The notes below the pieces were generated by a model, which saw only the letters and a program-made list of their open reading frames with translations, searched no databases and was not told the origin of the DNA. From Adineta vaga (taxonomy: Eukaryota; Animalia; Rotifera), in NCBI GenBank assembly GCA_021613535.1, contig CP075497.1, positions 7,750,001 to 7,814,000 of the forward strand: a DNA stretch of 64,000 bases, read 5' to 3'. Shown one piece after another: positions 1 to 19,563 of this stretch (the first letter of the stretch is position 1; every line of letters begins with the position of its first letter). Position numbers and translations under genes: made by a program.

Positions 1-3000
1 AATTTGTTGTTGAATAATAAAACGAAATGTATCTAATGTTCGTGGAATGATATTCATTGTATGAAACCATTGAATACTATCGTTCTTTTTTGTTAAATCA
101 TATAGAAAACTTAAGATTGCATAACAGACACGAAAGTTATCTCGTTCCTAAAACAAAATATAACAAAATCTTCACAAAAAACAAAAAAATCAAGTTGTAC
201 TTGAGAAACTTTATGAAATAGATCAATCACATTAGAAACTGTACGTTCTTGTTTAATATTAGCAGATAATATTGCCGATTCTTCTTTTGTGATAAAGATT
301 GATAATAAATGAAATGTATGTACAAGTGCCTATAAAGAATAATTTAAATCATAACAAAGAAATCGATTTTAAATAACGAACTTTAACAGCACATTTGTAT
401 TGAGGTGTTGTCGATGGATGTATATCAATAATATCATTACAATAATCCACAAAATCAAGTAAATGTGTTAAAACAGTTGAATATCGTGTTAAGTCATGTT
501 GTTGTTGATCAATATCTACACAAAAAAAAATGAATTGGATTAAATAAAGCATTCTCTTTGTATTTTACCAGGTGTATGTTCAAGAAATATTTGAATTAAA
601 AGAACTAATGCATCTAAATAACAATATTTCACGTAAATCGAAACGTATTCTGGTCCAAGAACACAATTAGCTAAATCAATATAAGTTGGTAGAATAGTTA
701 ATGGTGCTTGAACTTTATCACTACAAATACAAATCGATTGATTACTGATGAAATATTAACAGAATAGAAATTTACTTTTTCCATTTAATATTTGCATTCA
801 TAGTTAAATTTAAACATAGCACAGCTATTTTCATACATGTTGAATCATTTCGTGTTAGAACAAGTTGTACAATGGATGCTAATTCTTCAAACCAAGTTTC
901 ACCACCTGGAAGAATTTTTTCAATTCGATCATTCTATTCGAGAAGAACAATTTATAATATCAACTCGATTCAAAATACTTACATTTAAACAAAGTAATGC
1001 TTTCGTAAAATAAATAACTGAAGAAAAGAATGAAAATGATAAGGATTGTTCATTTAACATTTCATCCTCAATATTTGATTTAAAAAATGTTCGACAAGCC
1101 TAAAAAAATTCATTCATATTTTTCATTCAATTCTTCTCATAAGAAAACTCACTTTTATCCAATGAAGAAGACAATTATTAGTTATTAATTTATTCAATAT
1201 ATCATAAAAATCATTTCCAGTTTGATCACTAAATTCAAAATTTATTTTTCTCTTTTCTATTGAGATAAAAATAATCTTACGTCGTATAGTTCAATAAATG
1301 TTGTGTTAGTAAACGAAAGGATGTTGAAACTGCTCGTTTATCTCCTGTATCCATTAATCTAATTGGAACACTTGTATTCGTAATTGGTGTAGAAATATTC
1401 TTCCAAAAATCATTTCTATAAGCAAAACAAAAGTTAAATAAGCATTGATTTATATTTTCTTACATTTTAACAAAATAATCTACAAGTAATTGAGTATGTT
1501 GTTCCCAGAATTGTGTTATGAAAGTAACAGTTAATATAAATAAATCATTTGCACCGACTTCATTCGTATTCTAAATTAAACGAGAACAAATTAGGATGAA
1601 AAATACTTTTCCATTTATTACTTGTGCACTCCATCGTAATAATTCAACGATAGGTTGTAAAATTGTTGAATTACCAAATGTAGCTGTTAGAGTTGTATTC
1701 AAATCACAGAGATAACCAAGTAATGCTGGTTGAGAATGAACGCAAACAATTAAGAAATCCAAAATAGCCATAGTTAAATCTGGAGACTAGTATTGAAAGA
1801 AATTAATCAAAGATTGTCTTAGATTTGATTCTTTACTTTTCGATCTTTGATATTTTGAATGATAAATGTTCGAAATCGTTCAATATTAGTTTCTAATAGA
1901 ATCGAAAGTCCAGGCGTGATCTAAATCCAAAGGAATTGATATCATTTTTTTATTGAAATGAATTCTTTACTTTTGCTAAACTTGTTAAACATCGAAGACA
2001 TATTGGTGCTTTAATATCATTGATATGTTGAAGTAAAAAATCAATGCAAACTTTAATTAATAACTTTGATGCAAATGGATTATTCGTTGAATTAATATTT
2101 TGATTGAAATTTTCTACTTGATAATCGATTAATGAGGAAATAATTGACATGGCATTTTGTAAACATGATTGATATGATGATCGACTCACGGGGTCAGATA
2201 ATCTAAAGTAAGAACTTCTAGAAGAAATAAAGAAATTTTCTGAAATTACGTTGTATCATTCTCAGATGGCATTGCACATTGAAGTAATGCTTGACTAACA
2301 GATGGATGTTGTAACCAACCAAAGATGAAGATTGGTGTTCTAGAAAATGATATCATTTTTATTCGAAAAAGTTTCATGTAATAAATACAAACTTGTTTTC
2401 TTCATTGTCAATAGATGGTTTAGCTGATGAAGCTAAGCAACGAATAACAACTGTCCATATTATTTTCAAACATTGTTCTCGAATTGGTAACCATCGTTTG
2501 ATTTTAATGGATTTTGGTAATGTAGAAAAAAGTATATGAAAAAGAATTGCTCGAAAACGTTCACTTGTTTCACTAATCTATTTTAGAAAAGATAAAAAAA
2601 ATATTATTTGAAAAAGTTCAATAACATACATGAATAGTTTCTCGAGTCATTTCAAGTAAGGCAAGAAAAACTGGAATCCATTCATCAGCATATTGATTTT
2701 CACCACAGAGCATTTCTAATCGACCCCAAAATGCACTATCAAGTTCTGGTAATCTATTTGGAAAGAATAATAAACGATCATTGTTAATTAATCTTTGAGA
2801 TTTACCGTGCAGCAGGATCAAGTTCACTAGAGACAATAGCATTTTTATCAACAAACGATGGAAATAAATCCGAATCAAGAAAGAGAATTGTTAAATCTAA
2901 AGAAAAAAAAACATTTATACTTCAAACATAGAAATATCTTGATTTACTTTGAGCATGTTTCATTGTTTTGAATGCTCCAATTAAAACATGCGATGGAATG

Positions 3001-6000
3001 ACATTCATTTTGCATAAACTTAAAGAAAAGAAATAGATTGCTAAAAAAAAGACGATTACTATCAATTATCGTAATTTACCTTGGCAGAAGATAAACGATT
3101 CTCAATAGAATATCATTAAATCGATCGTAATAATCTGGTCGAATAAGAATTAATGTTGATATACAATCAATAATAGCCAATGTTTTAGTAAACATCGAGA
3201 GAACATTAGGATCTGAGTCATCGACTATTTTCAACGAATTATATCATAAAATGAATGGAATTCGCAAGAATTTTCTTACCTCGATCTTGCTTTCGAACAT
3301 AACCAAGTGCTTGATCGAGTACAAGTAGGAGAAGTACTTGTGGATCATATTTAGTTGGCCAAATAATAAATTGTTGATTGAAATTATTTCGAATAAATCC
3401 TCTTGTATCTTCTTGAATAGTAACTATTCCTATAGAAGAAAAAGAAAGAATAAGAAAGCGCTTTTCAACTCCGATTTTGTTTTTTCTTGACATTTATATT
3501 CAGACTAAGAAAAAGAAGATAGACATTTTTTTGTTTATCTCATTGCTAATGATTATATAAATGATACAAGTGCAATCGCACAATAATAATGGATTGTTTC
3601 GAAGGAAAAATTATTCTAAATCTCGTGTAAGTTATTAATAAAATCAGTAGAATTATAAATGTTTTCTCTTTAGTCAAAGAAGAAACGACAGAATCGTTTA
3701 TTTATTCGTCGTTCAAAAATCTATGATTCTTTGACAAATAATAGTGAATTTCCATCTTCTACATATGATAATAATTTTACAATTAATTATCGTCCACAAT
3801 CAGCGCAATTGAGGCATAAATATATAAGACAAAATCTAGTTCATGGTGCGGGTGATGAACAAATGACTCCGCCATTAAACGAACAAAAACATATTGATTT
3901 CACTGAACTTGAACAAATCTTTGATCATGCTATTCGAAATCGTATTCCACTCGAATTATACAAAACAAAATCATCTATCCAAACCAATCACTATCCTGAA
4001 TCTCTCCCAAAACTAACTGCAAATCTTCCCGAAACACGACTAGAATTAACTAATCAATCATTCATCTATCCATCTGTTGAAGAACAAAAATCAAACTCTA
4101 TTCAAAGGAGACAATATCGTAAAATACTTCTTGGAACTACTATTGTCATATTATCAGCTCTCATCGGTTTTTTTACTGTTTTCATTTTTGTTAAATAAAA
4201 AAAAGCGCCTAAATTTCTCTTTTTTATTTTTCATATCTACACTAAATTAATATTCAATTCGAGAGAGAACAAAATAAATAAATATCTAACTGATTCCTCC
4301 TTTCCAATATTCTGTTTGTCACTTCTAAATGAATAATTTATTTATTTTTACTTGTATTCAATTCCGACGAAATATTAATATCATCGAAAATTAACATTTA
4401 CCAATGTCTCGAACAAATTTATCGAATAATAATGTGAAAAACTTGTCATCACCGACAATCAATGAAATCTATGAAAAAGTTCGACCTTTACAAACAATCT
4501 CAAATAATGATCAAGCACATGGAGATGATACTTATATTGAAAAAACCATAGAATTATTCTCACCGACAAGTCAACATATATTACAATTAACAAAAAGAAC
4601 ATGTAATATTGAACTCTACATCAGAAATGAAATCATTTTTGTACTAATACTATTTCAGCTATATCTTCATCTTCAAATGAATTTTCTCTCGAAAAGGCTA
4701 TGCAAGTTACGGATACATCCAATGAAGCAATAAAAACAGATGATGAAAATGGAATGATGAAACTTTATCCAATGTCTATATTTAATCGAAAAGGTAGTTC
4801 AAGAATCTATCCTATTCTATGATAACTTCGACTCGTTGATATAATATTTTAGAACAGGATGTAATCTTAAGTGATATTTCCTTACAACAACAACAACAAC
4901 TACAGCAATTACCTGATAATGAATGTGAATATGAAATTGATCTGGGAAATGGTTGGATAACAAAATCTCTTTCATCTTATCAATCTAACGATAAAAAACA
5001 TAAACGAACAAGATCTGTTCTTTCTGCAGATTCAAGTCAACCGATAAGTACATTCAGAATTCCATTTACAAATACATTTTATAATCAACATTTACAATCG
5101 AAACAAATTCATCGAATAAATCATGTTAATCCACCAAATGTTCTGTTCAATTCACATGATTATATACAACGACAATATTCACGAATTTCTATTAGAACAA
5201 TATCAATTTTAAGTATTGGAACAATAATTCTTGCACTTCTATTTATTCTTATATTTCTTGTTTTCTAAAACTTTCTCGACTAATTTATTTTTCATAAATA
5301 AAAAGATAAAATCATTAACAGAATTTTCTCATTGTTGTCATGCAGATTAAAATCGTTTCAGAGGAAATATCTTCTTTTCTTTTTTTCGTTTCATGTTTTA
5401 AATGCCCGTGACTGGGCATTGTCGAACTTCTAGATTCAATCAAAAATCGATTCAATTCATTCGACGTTTATCTTCTTTCTCTTCACGAACATTTCATCAT
5501 CAAAAGAAACAACATGTTCCTTTGTTATTACCACAAGCTGATAATATTACTTTGAATTTAAATACATCAGCATTCACAGAATCATCACCAAAAACAATTC
5601 TTCGATCGGGTATGATGCTAACAACATTCGATACTTCAACAACAAAAATACCTCAAGCACCACCATTACCTATGAATTTCACAGAAAAACTTTCAACTGA
5701 AACATTGAAATCTACTGAATTTACTAAAGGAATCAAAAGTCGAACAAGTTCAATAACACCTTCAGGTACAGATCTTTCTCACTTAATGTTAATTCGACCG
5801 AGTCAAATCATGGAACCACCACCTATTATTCAAATGGCAAGATCCAAAACGTATTGCAATCCAATTACAAAATCGAATCTACGAAATCGACGTCGAACAC
5901 CATTGACACCTGACGTATTAGCCTTAACAAAACTTCGTCATCCCGAACATGTTAAATCAAGTATTGTTCAACGAATAGAAGAATTGAAACAAGCTTCATT

Positions 6001-7016
6001 AACTAATTCTCAATCTATGGATGAAAAATCGACACTAATTCCATCAGAAAAACAAACAGATCTTTTCATAACATGTGAATATAAAAATACTAATCAAGAA
6101 CGTCAATGGCTCGAAGATCAAACACAAAAGAATTCTTTAATACGATTTTTAAATACAAAAAACTATTTACAATTGAATAATCGTCTCTTTCAAATACGTT
6201 CTATTGAATTTATCGATAATACAAATGTTCGTTTTTATGCTCAAGAAAAAGTTTTCGAAGAAAATTTCTTAACCAAATATTTAAAACAAATAAGTATCAT
6301 TACTATTTTAATCCTTAGTATATTACGATTAATCGAAAATACTTTATCCAATTTAGCAATACCAGGAATACAAATTATTCTAAATTTAATCTATGTTTTC
6401 ATACTAATAACTATTGCCATTATGCTCATAACAAAATCAGAAATGAAATAAAGATACATACCAGGACCATATGGATAAATATGAGATATTGCAACACATT
6501 CGTCATTATTACCACCAAGTAATGCTATGTTACAATTTTGAAAGATATGAACAGCATCAACAAGAATATCACGATCGGATAGACGATCAGCCTAAAGAAA
6601 AATTTGATAGACAATTTAATTTATTAATTATAAGAAAATCATCTACTGATTTTTGAATGTCTTTTTTGTTTTGTAAATACTTACAACAGTATCAACTTGA
6701 TCTTCATTATCTTTCATTCGTAATGCATACAATTGAAGAGTTTGTTCGAAAAAGAGAGGAAAATAATCATCAACAGATTGTAATTGACTAAGTATTGGAA
6801 CATCATTGACCTTCGAATAGAAACCAAAATTTCAATCAAATATCTTCAATCATTTTCATCACATACTCTACGCTGCATTGTTAAATTTTTTGTTGAAAGA
6901 AATTGTATAAAATACTTTCTTTCAATGTATGTGGTGGTAGGTAGAACCAACTTTCTTAACAGCCCAACAAATTGATTCGTTCTTGCATTATCCAATAGAA
7001 AACTCTGTTTTCTCGC
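1..7016 (-). CDS. NUP188: Nucleoporin NUP188-like, multi-exon, runs off the window start; 5' end unresolved
   Basis: Hand-spliced exons 7016-6867, 6810-6685 and 6591-6462, then a 3032-nt intron (6461-3430), then many short-intron exons. Peptides QSVDDYFPLFFEQTLQLY, IYPYGP|GIVTIQEDTRGFI..IIWPTKY, CLTSLAKITP, AILDFLIVCVHSQPALLGYL and FWKNISTPI appear in the same order as recalled NUP188 motifs (FPHLLSPLLQL, YPLGG..IPQGTVG..VRWEYSY, ILEFLTVAVETQPGLIELF, FWENLTSPL). Phase 1 is consistent across the long intron. Confidence 0.72.
3561..4198 (+). CDS. Orphan tail-anchored protein A, nested antisense in the NUP188 intron
   Basis: ATG 3561; GT-AG intron 3627-3673 (phase 0) joins to the 3731-4198 ORF. 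Basic N-terminus; C-terminal hydrophobic helix ILLGTTIVILSALIGFFTVFIFVK*. Confidence 0.7.
4404..5268 (+). CDS. Orphan tail-anchored protein B, nested antisense in the NUP188 intron
   Basis: Three exons (introns ~4603-4658 and ~4794-4852) splice in frame. Ends YIQRQYSRISIRTISILSIGTIILALLFILIFLVF*. Confidence 0.7.
5402..6451 (+). CDS. Orphan protein C with S/T/P-rich N-terminus and C-terminal two-helix membrane hairpin, nested in the NUP188 intron
   Basis: Single 349-aa ORF with PQAPPLP and two C-terminal hydrophobic segments. The stop lies ~10 nt from the NUP188 donor site at 6461. Confidence 0.75.
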   Translation: MPVTGHCRTSRFNQKSIQFIRRLSSFSSRTFHHQKKQHVPLLLPQADNITLNLNTSAFTESSPKTILRSGMMLTTFDTSTTKIPQAPPLPMNFTEKLSTETLKSTEFTKGIKSRTSSITPSGTDLSHLMLIRPSQIMEPPPIIQMARSKTYCNPITKSNLRNRRRTPLTPDVLALTKLRHPEHVKSSIVQRIEELKQASLTNSQSMDEKSTLIPSEKQTDLFITCEYKNTNQERQWLEDQTQKNSLIRFLNTKNYLQLNNRLFQIRSIEFIDNTNVRFYAQEKVFEENFLTKYLKQISIITILILSILRLIENTLSNLAIPGIQIILNLIYVFILITIAIMLITKSEMK

Positions 7017-7093
7017 CTCTCAAATGTAAAGAAAAAAAAAGAAAGAAAGCATCATAGATTCTTTATCTCATTTGTGAATTCAATACATATTTG

Positions 7094-7393
7094 ATGGGCC
7101 AAAAAGTTCTTCTTATAATCGGTTTACTTGCTCTTGCACACGCCGGTTATTCAGCCGCTCAACATCGTGTTTACGTTCGTCTTACGGAACAACAATTTGA
7201 ACGTTTACCTGCTGATATTATCGTTCAAACTTTAATTGCTTTTATTGCTTGTTGTTTTGGTACAGTTCAACTTTTTGGTAAATTCAAACCTATTCTCATC
7301 ACAGCTGAATGGCAAAATAAAACTTGGGATACAATTGGTAATCGTCCATCGTTTATGACATTTAACCATCGTGGTAAAAAACTATTTCATTAA
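7094..7393 (+). CDS. MMGT1: Membrane magnesium transporter / ER membrane complex subunit 5
   Basis: LAHAGYSAAQHR, LPADIIVQTL and NRPSFMTFNHRG motifs; intronless. Confidence 0.93.
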   Translation: MGQKVLLIIGLLALAHAGYSAAQHRVYVRLTEQQFERLPADIIVQTLIAFIACCFGTVQLFGKFKPILITAEWQNKTWDTIGNRPSFMTFNHRGKKLFH

Positions 7394-7521
7394 TTGAAAA
7401 AAAAAACATTCTTTTCTATTCAGCTCTTTTCTTTTCTTTTCTCTTTGCTCATTTCATTCGTTTCTATTTCTTTATGTTTAATATTTTCCAAAACTAAGTA
7501 AAAAAAAAACATTTTTGTGCA

Positions 7522-8289
7522 ATGGAAGTTTGTGTCGATAGTTTTGAATCAGCTTTAGCAGCCGTAGACGGTGGTGCACAACGTCTTGAATTATGTAGTT
7601 CACTTGATCAAGGTGGTTTAACACCATCACTTGGTTTATTAAGATTAATTCGTCAACGTTTACCTTCGGAATTAGTTGTCTTCGTTATGATTCGTTGTCG
7701 TGCAGGTGATTTTGTTTATGATGAACATGAATTAAATGTTATGGAAGAAGAAATTCAATCATTTTTACAATCAAATCAACGTGTTGATGGATTTGTATTT
7801 GGTGCACTTCATCCTGATGGAACAATTGATGTTCAAAGTTTAAAAACTTTACTTGCACATATTCCGAATGATATTTCTTTAACATTTCATCGTGCTTTTG
7901 ATTATACAGCTAAATGGGAAACAGGTATTGATCAATTGATTCAACTTGGTTTTCATCGTATTTTAACAAGTGGACAAGAAACAAATGCATATTATGGAAG
8001 AAAATGTATACGTCAAATGATTACTTACGCTCAGAATCGAATTATTATTTTACCGGGATGTGGTATTAATATGACTAATCTTGAATCAATCTTACGTGAA
8101 ACAGGTGCCAAAGAATTTCATGCTTCTGCACGTATTCGTCGACCATCAAAAATGATTTATAAAAATTTTCAAAAGAAAATTTCTTTAAATGGTCAAAATA
8201 CGGATGAAGAAGATAATTCAATTCAAGTGACAGATAAAGAAAAAGTAAAATTAATGATGGATATCTATCGAAGAGTTTTTTACAAATAA
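7522..8289 (+). CDS. CUTC: Copper homeostasis protein CutC
   Basis: MEVCVDS, GAQRLELC..GGLTPS, MIR.R.GDFVY, TFHRAFD, RILTSG, PGCGI and EFHASA motifs. Confidence 0.95.
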   Translation: MEVCVDSFESALAAVDGGAQRLELCSSLDQGGLTPSLGLLRLIRQRLPSELVVFVMIRCRAGDFVYDEHELNVMEEEIQSFLQSNQRVDGFVFGALHPDGTIDVQSLKTLLAHIPNDISLTFHRAFDYTAKWETGIDQLIQLGFHRILTSGQETNAYYGRKCIRQMITYAQNRIIILPGCGINMTNLESILRETGAKEFHASARIRRPSKMIYKNFQKKISLNGQNTDEEDNSIQVTDKEKVKLMMDIYRRVFYK

Positions 8290-8416
8290 AACTTCCTCGT
8301 TTTTTTTTTCATTTGTTTTTAAATGCTCGGCGTCTCCTTTTCCTTCTTCCGTTGTTTCGTTATGTGAGAAAAAAAAATAAAGATGTTTGTACGATGTTTT
8401 GTTTCTTTTATTAAAG

Positions 8417-10320
8417 ATGAAATGTTTCGTTCGTCGTGTCTTATTAAATGATGTCTCATTTTGTTCGATACAATCATCTTATCTATTATCATTACGTAAA
8501 AATCGACTAGGCTCTATTAGATCTTATCATAGTGATTCAATTGAAGGCAATTTAAGTGATGAACCAGCTCAAGAAGAACAACGACTATCATCACATGAGA
8601 CAACGAAAATTCTACGGACACATGAAGCTAGTGTTCATTTGGAGGTAAAATGTCCAGTAAAATATTATGAAGTAAATTATCTCGGCGCAAATAATCCTCC
8701 TGGTATGTCTATAGAAGCTGTTTCTTGTTTGTTTTAGAAAAGAAAAACACGAATTTTATTAGCTTTTGAGAAATAATTGGCATGATAATATATCATAAGT
8801 AAAGAATAAGCTAAGGAATTGGACATAATGCATGTATTGACTAATTAATAGCTAAAAAATTGTGTGTTAACTAAATAATAGTATTGTATTTGGAATATTC
8901 ATATCAAACTTATTCGTAGCACATGATTTTTATCTTGCTAATAATTAGACTGCATGCCAATTTTACTAATTATTCATCCTTTTTTCATAGAGGATCGACA
9001 AGCTCAAGCTCGTATAAATTCTAGTGATTCCAATATGCATCTATTCGGAGTTTTTGATGGTCATGGTGGTCCATGGTGTTCTGACGCAATTTGTCATCGA
9101 CTATTCGAATATATTGCTGTATCATTAAATTCACCAAATGATTTAGAAACAATTATGAAAAAGGGACGAAAAATAACAAGTAGCAATCGAACTCCTAGTC
9201 AGAATCCACGCAATCTTTCATCATTACTTTTACATTCATATTACAATCCATATAAAGATGCACGTAGTTCAAAAACAAAAGAAATACATCAAATTAATTT
9301 ATTAAAACATATCGAAGAAGTTTATACATCATTTGATGCTGATAATACAGATCTTATCAGTGCTTTAGAAAGTGCATTCGTGAAATTAGATCGTGATATA
9401 TGTGCAGAAGCAATACCAACTCCTCCACAGCCAATTAATGAAGATCTTCTAGACATTAGCACTGCTGGTTCATGTGCTTGTGTAGCACTTGTAAAAGATA
9501 CAGATCTATATATTGCTAATTGTGGTGATGCACGAGCAGTTCTTGGTAAATTATTTCAATGAAATAAATGTCTACTATAGAAATATTTATGTTCATTCTA
9601 GGTACAACGGATGATCATGGCAATACGATTGCAGTTCCTCTTTCGATTGATCATAATATTCGTAATCAGAATGAAGTTGAACGAGTACTATCTGAACATG
9701 CACCAAATGAATCTCATTCAGTCATACGTAGTGATCGATTACTTGGTTTATTGATGCCATTTCGTGCATTTGGTGATATACGTTTAAAATGGCCATTGAC
9801 TGCACTTCGAGAATATTTACAACCTTATTATAAAAAAGGTGATGCAATACCACATTTCTATTTAACACCACCATATTTAACTGCTCGACCAGAAATTACT
9901 AAACATAAAATAACAAAAAAAGATAAATTCCTTGTTCTAGCAACGGATGGTCTTTGGGATTTATTAACATCTGAAAAGGTCGTTGAATTAATTTCAAATC
10001 ATCAAAAAGGTGTTCAAAGTTTCGATCGTTTTGTCTTAACTAAAACTGAAAATAAAAAAACATCCCTTAAATTAAGAGAAATCAGTGAATTATTATCGGC
10101 ACGACAACAAGCCATTAAAAATCAACCGATGGATCAAAATTCTGCGACTGATTTAATTCGTCATGCACTTGCTTATACAGCGAAAGGAAAATTTGATAGT
10201 AAACTGCTATCGGATGTATTAACATTTCCTAACCCACGCTCAATACGCGACGATATTACAGTAACAATTGTTTATTTTGATCAAGCAAATCTTGATCAAT
10301 ATGAAGACAAACAAAAATAA
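8417..10320 (+). CDS. PDP1: Mitochondrial pyruvate dehydrogenase phosphatase (PP2C family)
   Basis: ANNPP|EDR, FGVFDGHGG, GSCACVA, ANCGDARAVLG, RLLGLLMPFRAFGD, TPPYLTARPE, LATDGLWD and RDDITV motifs; introns ~8703-8990 and ~9547-9601; basic presequence-like N-terminus. Confidence 0.92.
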
Positions 10321-10572
10321 TTCTGCTCTAAATATTTTTTTTCTACAATATATTCTTATTTTTTATTTGGATATTAAAATAACGCATCTAATTTTTTTTG
10401 TCATGTAGAATATTAGTCTAATAAAATGCAATAGAATTTAAGCGCTTATATATTTGATTTTCTTACTAATTTTTTGTAAATTTAATATTTACATTGATCC
10501 AAAGAAAAAACGAAAACTAAGAATGCGACAGCGAGTTCCTTGTGTACGTTGATCTTTATTTGAATTGTAAGA

Positions 10573-12068
10573 ATGGCACAACGATACATAGCAACATTAG
10601 ATGTATCACAGGCCGATGCACGTTTTGATGTTCATGAAACGAATGTTTTGGAAAAAGATGAAATGCAAAGTGGTGATTTATTGAGTGGAATACATACGAT
10701 TAAAGTAATGGCTTATAAAGTAGAATCATCTTCGTCATCAGTATCAACATTAGGATATGGAAATAATTTATTGAATTCTACAGTAGAATTACATATTGGT
10801 GAACGAGAAAAGGTTGGACAGGGTACTTTCGGGTAATTGCAAAGTTTGAATCGAATGAAAGCATTAGAATTGATTTCATTGCTCGATTGTAATTTGAATA
10901 GGAAAGTATATAAAGCAAAATTAATAACAACTCAAGATATTGTTGCTATTAAAGAAGTTGAAATGGAAGACAAATTCAAATCTCGAGAATTAGAAATGCT
11001 CAAAACAATGATTCATCCAAATATTGTTCGATTAAAATATTTCTTTCATGCATCATCATCCTTAAAAGATATTTTATGTTTAATTATGGAATATATGCCT
11101 ATGAGTGCTCATCGTTTAATATCTGATTATCGACGAAATCATAAAATACTTCCATTATTCTATATAAAACTATTTGCTTATCAAATGTTACGAGGTCTTA
11201 GTTATCTTCATATACAAGACGTTGTAAGTAGGTATTGATATTGAGAGATTTGTAAATTAAATGATGATTTCATTTCTAGGCACATCGTGATGTTAAACCT
11301 GCAAATATGTTGGTTGATTATGATGCAGGCACATTGAAAATTTGTGATCTTGGTAGTGCAAAGAAATTGAATAGAAATGAAAAATCGGTTTCCTATGTAA
11401 AAATAAACAGATAAATAATAGATTGATTTTGATCCGTTTATTTTAGGTATGTACTCGTTATTATCGGTAAGTGAACAAGTAATCTTTGAATATCTTCAAT
11501 CATGAGAGAATAACACCGATGCAGAGCTCCAGAACTTCTTCTTGGTTACACAGAATATACAACATCAGTTGATATATGGTCTGCTGGTTGTTGTTTAGCT
11601 GAATTTCTGAATGGTTATGCAATTTTTCGTGGTACTGATTCCAGCGACCAAATGTACAGAATAATAAAAATTATGGGAATTCCCACACGTGATGAATTGC
11701 GCGAAATGAATCCACGTTATACTGGTTCTATTGATCTAACAGTTATTACGTTTGCACCACGTACAATACGTGGTTATCTTTCTGAACGTACACAAGAATC
11801 AGCATTGATTTTACTAGAACAATTATTAAAATATAAACCAAGCGAACGTTTAACATGTCAAACAGCACTTGCATCAGAATTTTTTACTGAATTAAAACAA
11901 CATTCGATCGTTCTACCAAACAAACGTCCTCTTCCACCGTTATTTAATTTTCATGAAAATGAATTATCAAAAACTTCATATTTATATTCCATGATTGTTC
12001 CAGATTTCTTACGAACTAGTCAGCCGAATATTCATGAAATTGATCATCCAAATTTAGGATTAAAATAA
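10573..12068 (+). CDS. Divergent GSK3/shaggy-like Ser/Thr kinase
   Basis: [47 protein letters not shown]|VCTRYY|RAPELL and [13 protein letters not shown]; four short introns and a ~20-nt exon (11447-11466). Confidence 0.88.
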
Positions 12069-12184
12069 AGCATAAAATCATCATTTTCACATGTTCTCTT
12101 CTCTTTCTCTTTCTTTTTCGTTTCTCTCCTACGCTTGTTATTTATCACATGAGATATTTTTATTGACATTACGATTATATTCGT

Positions 12185-12492
12185 ATGATGAAGGTGCGCC
12201 GCCGAAACCGAGTCGCCAAAAGTGAAACTGATCGTGAATATTTGGTTGATAATAATACTACGGAACATGAACCTTCAAAAGTTTGACTTTTTGTTTCTTT
12301 TTTCTGTTCTTTTCAGTTTTTTTTCTACAGGCACGCCGATTGTTATGGAGATTTGCAAAAGGAACGTGGAAAGCTTTAAAAATTGGTTTTCAAACAGCTG
12401 TCGGTAGTCAACCATTTGCTATTGCCCTCGAGCCAACAGCCGTAGCGACAACTATAATCGAATATCGAATGTATAGAAGAGCACATCGATAA
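12185..12492 (+). CDS. Small 85-aa orphan protein with amphipathic basic helix
   Basis: ATG 12185, intron 12281-12330 (GT..CAG, phase 0): MMKVRRRNR...EPSK|ARRLLWRFAKGTWKALKIGFQ...AHR*. Confidence 0.6.
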
Positions 12493-12583
12493 TAAAGAAT
12501 GTCAGATGAATTCGGTCTTTTTTTTTCTAATATAAAAACGGTTTATTATCATGTTTATATCTAACAAAAAAAACAATCTTCTT

Positions 12584-14278
12584 TTAAGAATAGGTACCGG
12601 GTGTTGAAATAGCTAATGTAGAAGCAGATTTGCATAAATAATCTTTATCTTGATCGTCATAGAATGATTCTTCATCTTTTGGTGTATAGATTTCAATTGT
12701 AGATAATGTAGTTGTATCATTCATAACACGACGATCCATCGATGTATCAAAACCAAATGAAGCAAAGGGTTTTGATGATCGTCCACTACTTTGATCTGAC
12801 GAAGGAGTTGTCGATGATGGAACAATATTTGAAAGTAAATTGTGCGAAGGTCGTTTACTAGAAATCGGCGTCATCATATCTTCATATACATGTTCTTTTT
12901 TCATTCGATTGTCATGGATAGGCGTGTTTGATGGAAATTGAAATGTTGGAATAACATGAGCTCTTTCTGCACGATACGTTGAACGATCAGTATGAGGAGA
13001 AAATGAATGTTTTATAATAGAATTAAGTCGTTGAGAATAAGGTGTTTTTTGTGTATTAGATATTGTATTACTATCAGTAGTTAATGTTTTCTTATGATGC
13101 TTAAAATAATGAAAATTATCATTCAGATTAATTTTTATCATAGTCTTATATCTTACAGATAATTCATCATGTTCATAGTGATGTTTGGCAATAGGATGTT
13201 TAGATGTGACGATACAACTTGTAATAGGTGTAGCTGGTAACGGGGATACCTGTGGAAGTTGATCAATCTGATATACAAGTGAAAATAAGAAATATATGAA
13301 ATAACTTCGTGAGATTATACTTTCGATGAACAACGTCTATTTTTGTCATCAATATCATCATAATATCCATTGGTTGTTGCTGTTACTGGTTGTCTTGATA
13401 TTCGTTCATAATCAATTAATGATGTTCGTGATGTCATATTTGAAGGCGTTAAATTCGTTACTGGTAGAGATGATCTTTCATTATGATATTGTCGGCTGAC
13501 TTGATTCGTATTTGTTAATGGAGATGATATTCGAGTTGGTGAACTAGAACAAAATTTTGATAGAAATTTATCGATTTGATAGTTTCTTACACAGTAAGAA
13601 TATTTTTTGTTGATTTTCGTTCAGTAACCCATGAATGTGTTCTCGCCCATGAATTGAACCAATCGGGATTGTATCGACTATCAAGTACACCTGGCATTCG
13701 TTGATCGAGATATGCAAAGATTTTTTGTCGTTTAGCAACAGATTCTTGAGTTGCTGCCCAATGTATAGGCGTTAGATTAGCATGATCTTTTATTTGTAAA
13801 CATTCACATATATGTTTATCTTCTTTACGTTGTTGATCTTCTGGATTGATTTCATCTTTTTTTATTGATAACAATAACTGTAAGATAGGAAGATTTGCTG
13901 ATCGACAAGCAATATGAACTGCTGTATGACCAGCTGAAAGACGTCTAGAAATATCTTTCTATTCACAGAAAATACTTGTGGATTATAATCAAATACTTAC
14001 AGCTTTGGATCGGCTTTATTGGCAAGGAGATATTCTATCGTTGATAGTTGATTATAATAAGTAGCTGTTGAAAGTGCTGATTCACCATAAAGATTCAATG
14101 CATTAATATCAATTCCTATGAATGATTTATATGAATTATTATTGTAATTGAAACAGTGGACCAGATCTTTGAATATACTTGCCTAATCTGATTACTCACT
14201 ATGTGTTTGTAAACATTTTTGAATTTTAGATGTTTGACCTAATCTTGCATACTGACACAATTCGTCGGCATTAGCCAT
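12584..14278 (-). CDS. Ankyrin-repeat protein with long S/T/P-rich C-terminal tail
   Basis: Spliced ANK repeats (LCQYARLG, GESALSTATYYNQ..LLANKAD, GHTAVHIAC, LTPIHWAA) followed by low-complexity exons. Confidence 0.8.
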
Positions 14279-14506
14279 GATCTGAAAACACAAACCTCTT
14301 TCCAAAAGGTTTTTTCCATTCTCATTTTCTATTCAATTCATTACTTTATGTTTTTAAATGATATATTTTTTATGTAAACAAATATCAATCATGTTTCTTG
14401 TTTTTTTTTATAAACATAAACATACAACTAGCGCTAGTCGCACACAGACATTTGAACTGTTTCAAATATAAATACAAGGAGAAAAAACAAAATATAAGTC
14501 AATTTC

Positions 14507-16458
14507 TTAGGCTGTTGTATACGGATGTGGTCGTCGAGACCTTGTCGTCGATGGTAATTGTTTGTATAATCGATTTCTTTGATATGTTGAACTAGTTGTG
14601 GAAGAATGGGATGAAAGTGATTGTATTGTAGTTGTTGTAGATGATGATGAAGTTTTCTTCTCACTACGTCGTTTATTTTGATTAACAATCAATGGCCAAA
14701 GTACATTACTTGCAATGGTATTGACTGTTCGATCATGATCTGCTCGAGATTTAATGGGTGTTGAATCTTTATTTGTTGAATGTAGTAATGTTAATAGAAC
14801 ATCACTAACACTATCATTTGTTGATGATAGATTTTCACTTATGGTTGATACTGGATTTTCACTATTTGTTGCTATGGATTGTTCAGTTAGTGAATTCCAA
14901 AATTGATCATCATCTTCATAGACAGCAGTGTCTATTGTTGAATTTGATGGCATCAGCATATCATCAAAATTGATAGCACTGGTACTTTGATCAGGTAAAG
15001 ATGTTTCCGTAGTTGTTTGAGAATTCGATATCAATTGTGATGAGGATGATGCAGATTGTGGTGGAGATAAAAGTGTTGAAGTCTGAGTTGTGGTATTTGG
15101 TTGTGTTGACTCGAGCAGTGACGTTGATCGACTAGTCAACCAAAGTGTGAGAAATTTTCCTTGACTATTAAGTGTCGATGACCGACTTGATACATCAATT
15201 CCATCAACTTTGACAAATTCTGTACCTAGAAAGTGAATAAAACCGTATAATAAAAATATTTATAAAAATTCTGCTTTGATATACATACTTTCTCGTAAAT
15301 ATACATTGATGATTGAACGTGACGTGGAATCCAACTCAATAATATAAACTAATTCATATGTAACACCTTGAGCATTTATTAAATGATCATCGGATGTAAT
15401 ATTTAAACGATTTACTATCAAGGCTAGACATGGACTAGATCTAGAATAAACAAAGAGAAGAAAAAATATAAAATTCTACATGTTTTTTCTCCCCACTTCT
15501 ACGCAACTCACCGTTTAAATGTGATCGTTTTCAATTGATTTTGATCTCCACATCGAAAGCAGACGCATGATGTTTGACTTGATCCTACCAACAATGTTGG
15601 TCGTATTTCACCGACATCATGAATAACATCAGTTATACTAAATAATTAAATTAGATATCTCATAATGATCAATAAATGTGTCTTACCTATTTGATATAGT
15701 ACAATCACATTCTTGACATTGACAATGCTCGTTTAGTTCAGTAGAAAATAATTCTTTTAGACATGGATCAAAACGAAAAAGACGGCGAACATTTTGAATG
15801 ATGTTCGTATGTAAAGAATTTTGTCTAGAATAATTAATCAAACGTTGTTTAGATTTCGTTTTACTTAGATCAATTATTCAATACTACCAATGAACTAGCG
15901 GTACAGAATCAACAGCTTTTTACCCGAAAGCCGGACTCCGTACACGCAATGACATGTGGGCGTCATCAGACAGAGCTCGAAGCCTGGTAATTTCAAGCTT
16001 ATGGCCACTATCCGACGTCAAGCCTCACACATCTGATCAGACTCTGCCTTACCTATAAGAATAAAAAGAAATTATTTATTGTGAAAGGAAGAGAAAGAAG
16101 AATTTTTTCTTGGCGTCACCCGAAAGACTGAATTTGGGTTGTTGAAGTGCAATGTGGGTAAAAAAAAGAAAAGAAAAGAAAATGGATTGTATTATACTCA
16201 CTTCAATATATTCTGTAAAATGTTGGAATACTCATCGAAAAGTTTCGATGAATTAGTTGATGGTACAGTTGAAAATAATGTTTGATCAAGATTGTGAAAT
16301 AACGTAGAAGATAATATCTTATTGCTTTGTGATGATGAAATTTCATTATAACGATGTAGAAGATCAGTTAAACAAGTAGAAAGTGTATAGAACGTCGCTG
16401 AAAGCTGACGAGCAGAAATCATAGATGACCAGATTGTTTCACTTGGCATCGTACTCAT
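14507..16458 (-). CDS. USPL1-like (peptidase C98 fold) protein, apparently catalytically dead
   Basis: Five in-frame exons give KELFSTELNEHCQCQEC..., CVCFRCGDQNQLKTITFKRSSPCLAL, GVTYELVYIIE, FVKVDG and KFLTLW, collinear with recalled USPL1 core motifs (IEKLF..FECSQC; CNNC..QIRKMVLEKVSPIFML; GCLYQITSVIQ; WLECDD; IHIVIW). S/T-rich tail ends in RRPHPY, a PY-NLS-like motif. Confidence 0.6.
15888..16052 (-). promoter_or_regulatory. Candidate poison cassette exon / recursive splice site within USPL1-like intron 1
   Basis: 165-nt GC-rich block bounded by a polypyrimidine-TAG acceptor and a G|GTAGTA donor, leaving a typical 61-nt downstream intron. Inclusion gives an immediate stop (AA|G TAA). Confidence 0.6.
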
Positions 16459-17208
16459 TTGTTTGGTAGTATTGTAATTTATGCTGAGTAAAATAAAATA
16501 CGTCTTGGTTTATGAAGAAAGGAGTCATGAGACTCTTCATCGTAAAGGCAAGGATAACACGGAAAATGGCTAATTGAATGTAACATTAATTAAAATGAAA
16601 AAAAGAATTAAATTTAATATAGAATTCTGTTGAAAATAAAGAGAAAAATATTTTATATTTATTTGGAAAGATTTTGTTGAAATTTTGTAGTGTCCATGGG
16701 CGACATCTACCAATTACACAGGAAAGGAAGGGAAGCAGACCTAATCGATCGTTTGTTAATAGATTAAAATAAATGAAAGTAAATACGTGAGATGTAAATT
16801 GAAAGGTGAGATGTCTCGATCGCTTGTCACACAAATAAAAAGTGCCTAAGAAGAAAGGCTTATCGTTCATCATTTTTGTTGTGTTCTTCTTCTTCTCCTC
16901 CTTTTTTGTGATAGATTACAACTCTAGTATTGGAACACGTTTTGAACAACAATTAGTAAATGATCGTAAGCTTATGTTTTATCGATGAATATGTAACGAT
17001 CTATGCATCATAAATACATTCGATCAGTTTTTATATGAATAAGAATAGGACAAGGCCGGACATTTTTAAAATATGTTCTCGAAGGTTGAACAAAAAATAC
17101 AGAACGTGAGTAAATGCGGAAGGAAGAGATATATCCGCTCTCGATTAGATATTTACTACAAAATGTCCTCTTTATATTCTATATACAGGCCTATATCATT
17201 CGATAAGA

Positions 17209-19563
17209 ATGATTGTCAATCAACGACGTTTATTAAGATTTCTTTTTATTATTTTTCTCTTGACATCAGCAACAATTCGTATTGAAGCTGTGGCTGGTCG
17301 ATGTTATCTATGTTCACAAAATACACTTGCTGAATGTGCTGGTAGTACCCAACCCAATTCTCCACTTTATCATACTATTCTTCAATATTATACCGAACCA
17401 TGCAATGGTCAATGTGTTCTTTTTCGAAATGAACATACAGCAACTATACGTGGATGTTCATGGACATACGGACATATGACTACGAAAACAACTGGATGGC
17501 ATGAATTAAGTCCTGGCATACGTGCCTATTTTTGCGATAGTTATCTTTGTAATAATGGTACTTATGAACAACCAGAAAAGACTATGTTTGGTGTAGGAAT
17601 GATCGCCCCTAATGAATTTCTCCCACTACCACTACCACAACCACCACTACCACCACAGCAACAAATCCTTAATCCACAACAGTTATCTATTCTAGTTGGA
17701 AATACACTTCCAATGATGCCAAATAGTAAGTTCGATGAGCTTTTTTTCTTCTCAAATATTTAGCTATTATATATTTAATCTCTGATGACAAAACATAAAT
17801 TTAGATCAACATTTACCATCTATTGACAATGTACATCAACAATTACGTCAGTGTTATTCATGTACAGCTCATCAACAAGGTTGTAATGAATTTCTTGATC
17901 CACATTATGTGTCCAAATATATTCGTCCATGTCCAGCAAGTTGTATTATCTTTCGAAATCCCAATGATCACGATAGTATGTGTATCAACTCGTGGATAAG
18001 AGATATTTTCTAAATTTATTATAGTAATCACACGAGATTGTTCGATATCATGGCCACAAATACATGCAAAAAGTGGTCTTCATAAATTGCTTGGTTCTGA
18101 TGCATTTTTTTGTCAAGAATCCTTGTAAAACAATTCATGCTTATTCAATTATTTATTTCTCTTTCTACTCTTTTAGATGCAATGGAATTAATTTTGATTT
18201 TATTATGGGTTCGTGCATAAATCTTTTCTTTTTTTTTGAAGCACACCGAAACATTTTTATAATTGGTTACTCTCTGATATTTAGGTATTTTTCATAATCA
18301 ATTACCAGCTGTTATAACCTTTCCACCATTACATACAACTACAGTACCGTTTCATACTGAACCTATTACAGATACTTCACCAATTGATACTACGATGATC
18401 AATGTTGATGATAATCAGGATAATGTTAATTGGGAAGATCCTGATTTAGATTTTGTTCTTGTTGAACCAACAATAACAACAACACCACTACCACCACCAT
18501 CACCAATAATTCCAGTTGTAAATACTCCTCCTACTTTTGCAAGTGAATTACCAGATGATATCGATATCATAGATGAATTATCAACACTTTCACTTCCACC
18601 TATTGAACATTTCGATTTCCTTGATGAAATTTCTCCCAGCAGTACGATTGCTGGTGGTGTTGCTGTTGCTCAACAAGATTCTCAATTTAATTGGTGGGAT
18701 GTCGATGAAGCTTCTCCGTCATCTCTACCAGAATCAGATCAAATTCCTTTAGTAACAACAACAACAAAACCAGCAATAGTTCCAGTTTTCCATACATTTA
18801 CAATAGTACCATCAACAAATAAACCAGCAGAAATCGCTGAAGATGACGAATGGTCTATATTCAATACGACTTTAACATCATCAGTTTCTCCTTCGAATCA
18901 TTTATCTGAATCAAATTCTGATATTGAATTTGATATGAATGATTATTTTACTTTTCCATCATTATCAACTACACCAGCAATGAATTCAATACTTAATCGT
19001 ACTCAGCCATTATCACCATTTTATTTTACTGATCATAATACAAAAGAACAACTAGCAGGATTAAATAAACCTATGCCTACATTAGCTGTGCCACCATTTT
19101 CTTGGATGTTACAGTTAGCCAATCAACCCTCAGGTGCTTTACAAAGTCGACAAAATTTTATTAATAAAACTCTTACGACACCATCAACACCAATTGTGAA
19201 TAAAAGGAAGGATAAGAAGAAAACGCTGACATTAAAAGGCAAATCTAGTAATCAAATCGATTATTTTTATGAACTTTGCAAGAAAAAGCAATGTCAAAAT
19301 GGTGGACGTTTAAATTCAGATTGTTTATGTATTTGTTTACCAGCATTTAGTGGAGATCATTGTGAAACTGGTATGATTATTAACTTATGAATTAAACAAG
19401 AAAAACTAAAATATATAATACTCCTTTTCTAGTACATTGTGACCAAGAACCAGCTCATATTTGTGATTTTGTACTTGATCATGAATGTAAAAGTGATTAT
19501 GTTCGTTATTTATGTCCGAAATTTTGTCAGATGAATATTTGTTCTACGAACAAACCCTCGTGA
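17209..19563 (+). CDS. Secreted protein: 2x Ly6/three-finger-like domains, acidic mucin-like spacer, EGF, ShKT-like domain
   Basis: Signal peptide; RCYLC..C..PC..C..RGC..C..LCN and QCYSC..RDC..C..LCN; CQNGGRLNSDCLCICLPAFSGDHCE; C-terminal C..C..C..LCPKFC..C; six exons. Confidence 0.75.

Follow-up and report, generated by a model that had tools for sequence, protein, structure and literature searches.

The first intron of a USPL1-like gene of the bdelloid rotifer Adineta vaga contains a GC-rich block that is best explained as the body of a cassette exon that does not code for protein and is conserved in this intron of the USPL1-family gene across bdelloid rotifers. We analysed a 64,000-nt stretch of A. 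vaga DNA (the window); all positions given here are window coordinates, and the gene is read on the minus strand. We consider it likely that the block belongs to a conserved unit for unproductive splicing, gated by RNA structure, through which the output of the gene is set. Such a unit would switch between productive splicing, which connects exons 1 and 2, and unproductive forms, which would be degraded by nonsense-mediated decay (NMD) or kept in the nucleus, and the splicing choice would set the amount of USPL1-like protein. An earlier note, made from the DNA letters of the window, had proposed a poison exon in this intron, and that proposal is supported by an acceptor junction in an RNA-derived contig, by splice sites and a layout that are conserved, and by the stop codons that the exon brings in.

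Intron 1 (16201-15825, 377 nt, GT..AG) is about six times the size of the neighbouring introns. The earlier note had described an intron of about 375 nt with a GC-rich block inside, and both are there, the limits proposed for the intron (15827-16200) being 1-2 nt off at each end. The GC content is 0.50-0.51 at 15900-16049 versus 0.28 in the remainder of the intron. The cassette exon is found at 16052-15885 (168 nt, 49% GC). It splits intron 1 into sub-intron A (16201-16053, 149 nt, GT..AG), which is spliced out when exon 1 joins the cassette exon, and sub-intron B (15884-15825, 60 nt), which starts with the donor GUAUUG. Both an acceptor UAUAG| and a donor A|GUAU are present in 19 of the 19 distinct sequences of our alignment across bdelloids (see below). 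The donor suggested before, G|GUAGUA at 15887, is not conserved; because the conserved donor lies at 15884, we end the exon at 15885.

Inclusion of the cassette exon reads AAG UAA in frame with exon 1, and full retention of intron 1 reads AAG UGA, both of which stop at codon 87. The stop after codon 86 precedes the Peptidase_C98 region of the protein and four further exon junctions. The block has stops in all three frames, which agrees with the earlier reading of an immediate AAG UAA stop accompanied by stops in every frame. Three lineages have variant exon starts (L015, L027-29 and L034 in our numbering of loci), each of which gives a stop within 22 codons, as read by eye. We take the cassette exon to be non-coding because its length is not kept to a multiple of three across relatives.

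Evidence from RNA comes from assembled contigs. The four runs examined were all of contigs, and a record filter drops some of the records. In run X5, a 331-nt contig goes from position 16401 in exon 1 to 16200, and then continues from 16050 down to 15922. Because a GT fits both sides of the break between 16200 and 16050 and the gap is a 149-nt GT..AG interval, we place the junction at 16202|16052. The acceptor with its AG at 16054-16053, which had been called a good one, is therefore used. A 1939-nt contig of run X1 has been spliced at intron 2 (15638-15686 is missing) but runs unbroken across 15687-16500, including the whole of intron 1. Of the junctions that the earlier note had proposed looking for, the one to 16052 is thus seen in the X5 contig, but neither the donor of the cassette exon nor a possible 8-nt microexon has junction support; the microexon is also missing in loci L013 and L023.

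The conservation of the block was assessed in 29 loci, gathered by two independent routes, from the contigs of 13 protein matches and from a metagenome scan. The block occurs in the same intron in 28 of the 28 loci that reach far enough, which amount to 19 distinct sequences and include Rotaria; L010 ends inside the block and is not counted among the 28. It is present even in L027 and L034, whose exon 1 shares no more than 62% and 52% identity with that of the window. The layout is constant, with a sub-intron A of 119-183 nt and an exon of 168-187 nt in the 16 loci measured and, in the 14 loci that allow its measurement, a sub-intron B of 59-68 nt. The mean pairwise identity is 0.86 for the cassette exon and 0.90 for its folded core, compared to 0.71 for exon 1, 0.88 for exon 2 (0.75 at third codon positions), and 0.61-0.62 for sub-introns A and B. 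The cassette exon is thus about as conserved as the best-kept coding exon, and more so than exon 1. Set against the 0.61-0.62 of the intron sequence and the 0.75 of third positions, the 0.86 of the exon points to conservation above that of neutral sequence. The alignment across bdelloids that the earlier note had called for therefore finds the block conserved at the same position and with the same splice sites (28 loci, 19 distinct sequences). A separate motif, AACCYAAAUU (about 16131-16140 in the window), stands some 75-85 nt upstream of the cassette exon and is conserved in most of the lineages, with an A-run and a AAUAAAUAAUUUAUUUUUAUC tract after it. The motif may act as a branch or pyrimidine signal, or in some other way.

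Selection maintains the exon body as two hairpins that lie next to each other. On the minus strand, 16060-15880 has a folding energy of -66.5 kcal/mol (z -4.3), a stability matched by 0 of 200 shuffles; on the plus strand, the same stretch reaches -36.3 kcal/mol (z 0.0). The asymmetry between the strands comes about because of G.U pairs, and it points to a structure at the RNA level. Hairpin P1 (16033-15951) is long and irregular, with approximately 37 paired positions and the conserved internal loops UUGA/AC and CAU/CGA. Hairpin P2 (15947-15898) has about 20 basepairs and a conserved 7-nt loop, CGGGUAA. The two hairpins are 0-3 nt apart. For the 57 pairs of P1 and P2 in the RNAalifold consensus of the 19 distinct sequences, 99.3% of the cells have standard pairing, versus 33-53% after a slide of the partners by 1-3 columns. 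Variation is seen at 29 of the 57 pairs; in five pairs (15 cells) both partners have changed, and no more than seven cells fail to pair. Sequence varies freely in the apical loop of P1, while the P2 loop CGGGUAA and the P1 internal loops UUGA/AC and CAU/CGA are nearly invariant. Relatives have an extra basal P1 helix, formed by AAGAUGAUGAU with GUCGUUAUCUU; in the window both of its strands are gone, through losses of 9 nt from the 5' side and 5 nt from the 3' side (alignment columns 35-43 and 135-139). The paired loss of both strands is itself evidence that the basal helix exists. L034 has a partly similar 5' deletion at the same helix. Both P1 and P2 persist in the whole-intron folds of four lineages.

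Other pairings within the exon were tried. The pairing between GGCAGAG and CUCUGUC that the earlier note had suggested is rejected, as most relatives show an A.A mismatch in it and L027 fits it less well still (alignment read by eye); CUCUGUC pairs instead inside P1, with covariation support. A reading of UGAUGA/UUGA as a k-turn is also rejected, the flanking stems being a misfit in either register and covariation favouring a continuous helix. A 5' toggle hairpin, AUCAUC/GAUGAU, that would compete with the basal P1 helix pairs in 85% of the cells; it shows no covariation, and a +3 slide does equally well.

Two more helices involve the splice sites themselves, such that the exon-1 donor lies within a conserved helix in most lineages, and the acceptor of the cassette exon does so in 19 of the 19 distinct sequences. 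In the donor helix H1, as found in 13 relatives, the exon-1 donor GUGAGUAAAA is part of, and masked by, a 17-bp hairpin with UUUUACUCAU, located about 30 nt downstream. In H1, 88% of the cells pair, versus 39-51% when slid, and the complement ACUCA is invariant though the surrounding intron is only about 61% identical. The window has its own version, in which CACUUCAA at 16149-16142 is complementary to UUGAAGUG at the exon-1 donor (16206-16199) and which appears in the minimum-energy fold. L027 and L034 are without H1, and both have consensus GUAAGU donors. The overlap with the donor-pairing CACUUCAA gives a better account of the window's ATTGCAC, proposed before as a U1A site, a word that is found in no relative. 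In the acceptor hairpin H2 (16064-16049), UUAUU, which most relatives have as UUAUC, is paired with the GGUAA that opens the exon, leaving the AG of the acceptor in the loop. For H2, 99% of the cells pair, and the lineage in which the GU has changed to GC has a matching A to G change in the pairing pyrimidine tract.

The start of the exon is also where exon 1 and the cassette exon would rebuild a 5' splice site. The window reads UAUAG|GUAAGG; in the alignment, 16 of the 19 sequences have GURAG, one has GUUAG, and a lineage of three sequences has GCAAAG. Read by eye, GUAAGG fits the 5' end of this genome's U1 better than the exon donor GUAUUG does. The ratchet site proposed in the earlier note thus stands as AG|GURAG in 16 of the 19 sequences, but it is lost as GCAAAG in one lineage that has the compensating change in the pairing partner. 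This compensation means that the conservation may serve the acceptor hairpin H2 as much as it serves recursion. All of the repeated words that the earlier note had listed are present in the window, but only UCGGGU(G)A recurs in relatives; among the closer of these it lies both within sub-intron A and in the loop of P2. In the window this donor-like word is UCGGGUGA at 16123-16116, and its P2 counterpart is UCGGGUAA. Taken together, the masked donor of exon 1, the regenerated donor, the weak donor of the cassette exon, and UCGGGU(G)A make up a cluster of U1-type sites, which is suggestive with regard to the snRNP sensing proposed in the earlier note but which we do not count as evidence for it. 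Sub-intron B has a small hairpin upstream of the exon-2 acceptor (15835-15860 in the window; about 3610-3630 in L008), formed by AAACG..CGUUU in the window and by AACAUAU..AUAUGUU in most relatives. This hairpin may affect access to the branch site.

The host gene has five exons. Exon 1 (16458-16202, 257 nt) starts with an ATG at 16458 and contributes 85 codons and 2 nt. After intron 1, exon 2 (15824-15687, 138 nt) begins the stretch that matches Peptidase_C98 in the ortholog described next, and it is followed by intron 2 (15686-15638, 49 nt), exon 3 (15637-15512, 126 nt), intron 3 (15511-15441, 71 nt), exon 4 (15440-15289, 152 nt), intron 4 (15288-15226, 63 nt), and exon 5, which extends 719 nt to the stop (15225-14507). 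The exon-1 open reading frame (ORF; 86 amino acids) matches 13 proteins at 63-80% identity, including proteins of Rotaria socialis and R. magnacalcarata. An exact-product look-up of this ORF returns no record. A search of representative proteins with exon 1 gives P0014 (our label), an annotated 463-amino-acid protein of Rotaria sp. Silwood1, which follows the exon model of the window; exon 1 of the window aligns to its residues 1-88 and is 71% identical. P0014 exceeds the gathering score of the Pfam family PF15499 Peptidase_C98 (USPL1), with 35.4 bits versus 27 (E 1.2e-8), in an alignment that covers positions 105-249 of the 272 of the model and leaves the N-terminal part of the model unaligned. 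The description of the host as a USPL1-like gene is supported by this Rotaria ortholog. The assignment rests on this database protein, as the window was searched exon by exon; searched singly, the window exons have no Pfam match. A genome-wide exon-wise search with PF15499 also gives no match, and no second gene of the family is detectable exon by exon; an ohnolog of the host gene was looked for within the same genome, and none was found. No USPL1 chain is matched in the PDB, searched by sequence and by profile. The single-sequence AlphaFold model has a predicted local distance difference test (pLDDT) score of 38, too poor to be used for catalytic residues. The Cys in STCLTD is nearly invariant, and we list it only as a candidate for the catalytic position. 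Two other Rotaria proteins, P0020 (R. magnacalcarata, 289 amino acids) and P0021 (R. sordida, 205 amino acids), represent a second, more divergent gene copy in Rotaria, with 51-55% identity in exon 1 and annotated models that skip differing exons.

Around the host gene, the next gene downstream is on the same strand and has ankyrin-repeat-like exons (12584-14310, minus strand). An ankyrin neighbour, with weak Ank matches, also follows the USPL1-like gene in L006 and L013, which makes this a conserved gene order. Downstream of the ankyrin gene and on the opposite strand there are protein-kinase-like exons with HPNIVRL and DLGSAKK motifs (10837-12068, plus strand). On the promoter side of the USPL1-like gene, and divergent from it, a 184-amino-acid ORF (17209-17763, plus strand) has a hydrophobic N-terminus and many cysteines, and is possibly a small secreted protein.

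Several observations weigh against a regulated unproductive-splicing unit. The runs X1 and X5 are called RNA only by guess, the GT..AG deletions in their contigs being what argues that they are RNA. The productive junction between exon 1 and exon 2 is absent from the four contig runs, an absence that proves nothing given that the runs are of contigs and that the records were filtered. The junction of the cassette-exon donor is not seen either, the sole junction-bearing contig ending at 15922, and use of the acceptor with sub-intron B kept could be an alternative form. A putative factor probably occupies the conserved loops; we infer both this factor and the loss of the unproductive forms by NMD or their retention in the nucleus. 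Finally, the sequence conservation of the stems exceeds what the structure needs, which also fits an RNA acting in trans. That alternative, to which we give a rather small chance, takes the two-hairpin block to be a stable trans-acting small RNA, for instance a new Cajal-body RNA or one like the small nucleolar and small Cajal-body RNAs (snoRNAs and scaRNAs), released from the intron or its lariat, so that any effect on splicing of the host would be secondary. The fold being found only on the strand of the gene, the block being as conserved as the best-kept coding exon and above exon 1, and the conservation of the P2 loop and of the internal loops all speak for it, and many intron-hosted RNAs are of such size. 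Against it, the 5' end of the block is exactly a used splice acceptor, a conserved donor stands one normal intron length upstream of exon 2, and the searches for known RNAs find nothing of the kind. An Rfam search of the whole window at gathering score returns nothing, and with E values up to 10 there is nothing meaningful in the region, in five related loci, or in the block of one relative taken alone. The Rfam/Infernal scan, which the earlier note had proposed as the check that could overturn its reading, thus gives no snoRNA, scaRNA, or known-family match to the block, in the window or in relatives. A tRNA scan finds none. As for C/D or H/ACA features, terminal boxes are absent, as are pseudouridylation pockets; the 3' end has no CUGA nearby, the UGAUGA lies inside P1, and there is no ACA three nucleotides from an end. 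Nor is there a second copy in the genome: the DNA of intron 1 matches only itself in the 100.8-Mb genome, and a covariance model of the fold finds only itself among the best 150 of about 18,900 first-look candidates, which are those that were scored. Mimicry of a small nuclear RNA (snRNA) by the block was considered as well and is at chance level for the four snRNAs compared, the U1, U2, U4, and U5 of this genome (the comparison left out U6, U7, the minor snRNAs, and 7SK): for the blocks of the window, L008, and L027, similarity and complementarity have z scores of -1.0 to 1.3 relative to shuffles.

A different explanation requires no regulation. Where introns measure about 55 nt and are defined across the intron, the 377-nt intron would be removed constitutively by recursive splicing, as 149 and then 228 nt, by means of AA|GUAAGG, and the hairpins would merely shorten the distance. 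In favour of it, AG|GURAG is found in 16 of the 19 sequences, the regenerated GUAAGG is stronger than the exon donor GUAUUG by complementarity to U1 (by eye), P1 and P2 would loop out about 135 of the 228 nt, and recursive-splicing exons (RS-exons) are a known mechanism (PMC6224609, PMC8605326). We nevertheless regard this explanation as slightly less probable than a trans-acting RNA, since the GCAAAG lineage has a compensating change in the pairing partner, a spacer needs neither 86-90% identity nor conserved loops, and abundant retention of the whole intron suggests that its removal is inefficient or regulated. It is very unlikely that P1, P2, or both are exon-embedded microRNA precursors, whose cleavage by Drosha would compete with splicing. 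P1, with its approximately 37 paired positions, variable terminal loop, and conserved arms, has some of the looks of one, but the hairpins are just 0-3 nt apart, P2 has only about 20 basepairs, P1 has large conserved internal loops, and no match to a microRNA family, or to a known riboswitch aptamer, is found in Rfam. That the block is GC-rich by chance or is left over from a mobile element, as the odd composition alone might suggest, has practically no probability left: the block is single copy, bdelloid lineages share it at one and the same position, and it shows covariation, so that we count this explanation as refuted. A more specific proposal is that the two-hairpin domain is a sensor RNA, either aptamer-like or bound by a ribonucleoprotein, that gates the splice sites by means of the donor and acceptor helices; its input would be the supply of small nuclear ribonucleoproteins (snRNPs) and Cajal bodies, or a small molecule. 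We put this proposal forward as a tentative one, and doubt it more than we favour it. The explanation that we prefer is the conserved, structure-gated unproductive-splicing unit in a gene of the USPL1 family.

USPL1 is a Cajal-body SUMO isopeptidase that is required for the transcription of snRNAs by RNA polymerase II (PMC3937775). In mouse and human USPL1, skipping of the 169-bp exon 2 results in a premature stop and an NMD target, and the form that contains exon 2 rises when SMN, and with it the assembly of snRNPs, is reduced (PMC4824080, PMC2787017). What the earlier note had said about the mammalian gene, both on snRNA transcription and on the shift in splicing, is correct according to these papers (PMC3937775, PMC2787017, PMC4824080). 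The mammalian and rotifer cases share the gene family and alternative splicing near the 5' end that gives a transcript with a premature stop. They differ in that the stop in mammals is made by skipping a coding exon, and in the rotifer by including a structured non-coding exon or by retaining the intron; we have found no sequence relation of the mammalian gene to the rotifer element. By analogy, given the gene family and the behaviour of mammalian USPL1, it is plausible that the splicing unit is linked to snRNP supply. The host is not known as an RNA-binding protein. A literature search turned up no paper about this element or about poison exons of bdelloids.

Conserved poison exons are a main route by which the splicing machinery regulates itself, and those of animals have mostly been described as linear platforms for binding. 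A conserved poison exon of SNRPB was reportedly described by Saltzman et al. in 2011. The poison exons of SNRPB, the SR proteins, and TRA2B (PMC11791180) resemble the rotifer exon in being non-coding exons with a stop, conserved much more than the neighbouring intron, in a gene linked to splicing. They are thought to give homeostatic feedback and are conserved mainly as linear binding sites, whereas the rotifer exon is a two-hairpin fold of roughly 150 nt with covariation. Folded RNAs that act on splicing are known from other eukaryotes: the plant P5SM is a mimic of 5S ribosomal RNA in the poison exon of TFIIIA, and eukaryotic thiamine pyrophosphate (TPP) riboswitches gate splice sites. As in those cases, here a folded RNA is placed in an alternatively spliced region where productive or unproductive splicing is decided. 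Unlike P5SM, the rotifer fold shows no likeness to the RNAs it was compared with, U1, U2, U4, and U5, and unlike the TPP riboswitches, it matches no known riboswitch or other Rfam family, any ligand being putative. RS-exons and ratchet points (PMC6224609, PMC8605326) are alike in having a GUAAG right after the acceptor, such that joining to exon 1 rebuilds a 5' splice site; they differ in that the known cases are in very long introns, compared to the 377 nt here, and in that one rotifer lineage has lost the motif.

At a minimum, the block is a new candidate RNA family for the annotation of bdelloid genomes. If the fold is the sensing part, it would provide a compact model, open to testing, of how RNA structure gates unproductive splicing in an animal whose introns are very short, and it would be a case in which one gene family has reached feedback by different constructions in mammals and in rotifers. 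If the more specific sensor-RNA proposal were true, this would be a new animal family of cis-regulatory RNAs, with a logic like that of the plant P5SM and the fungal TPP riboswitches and unrelated to either.

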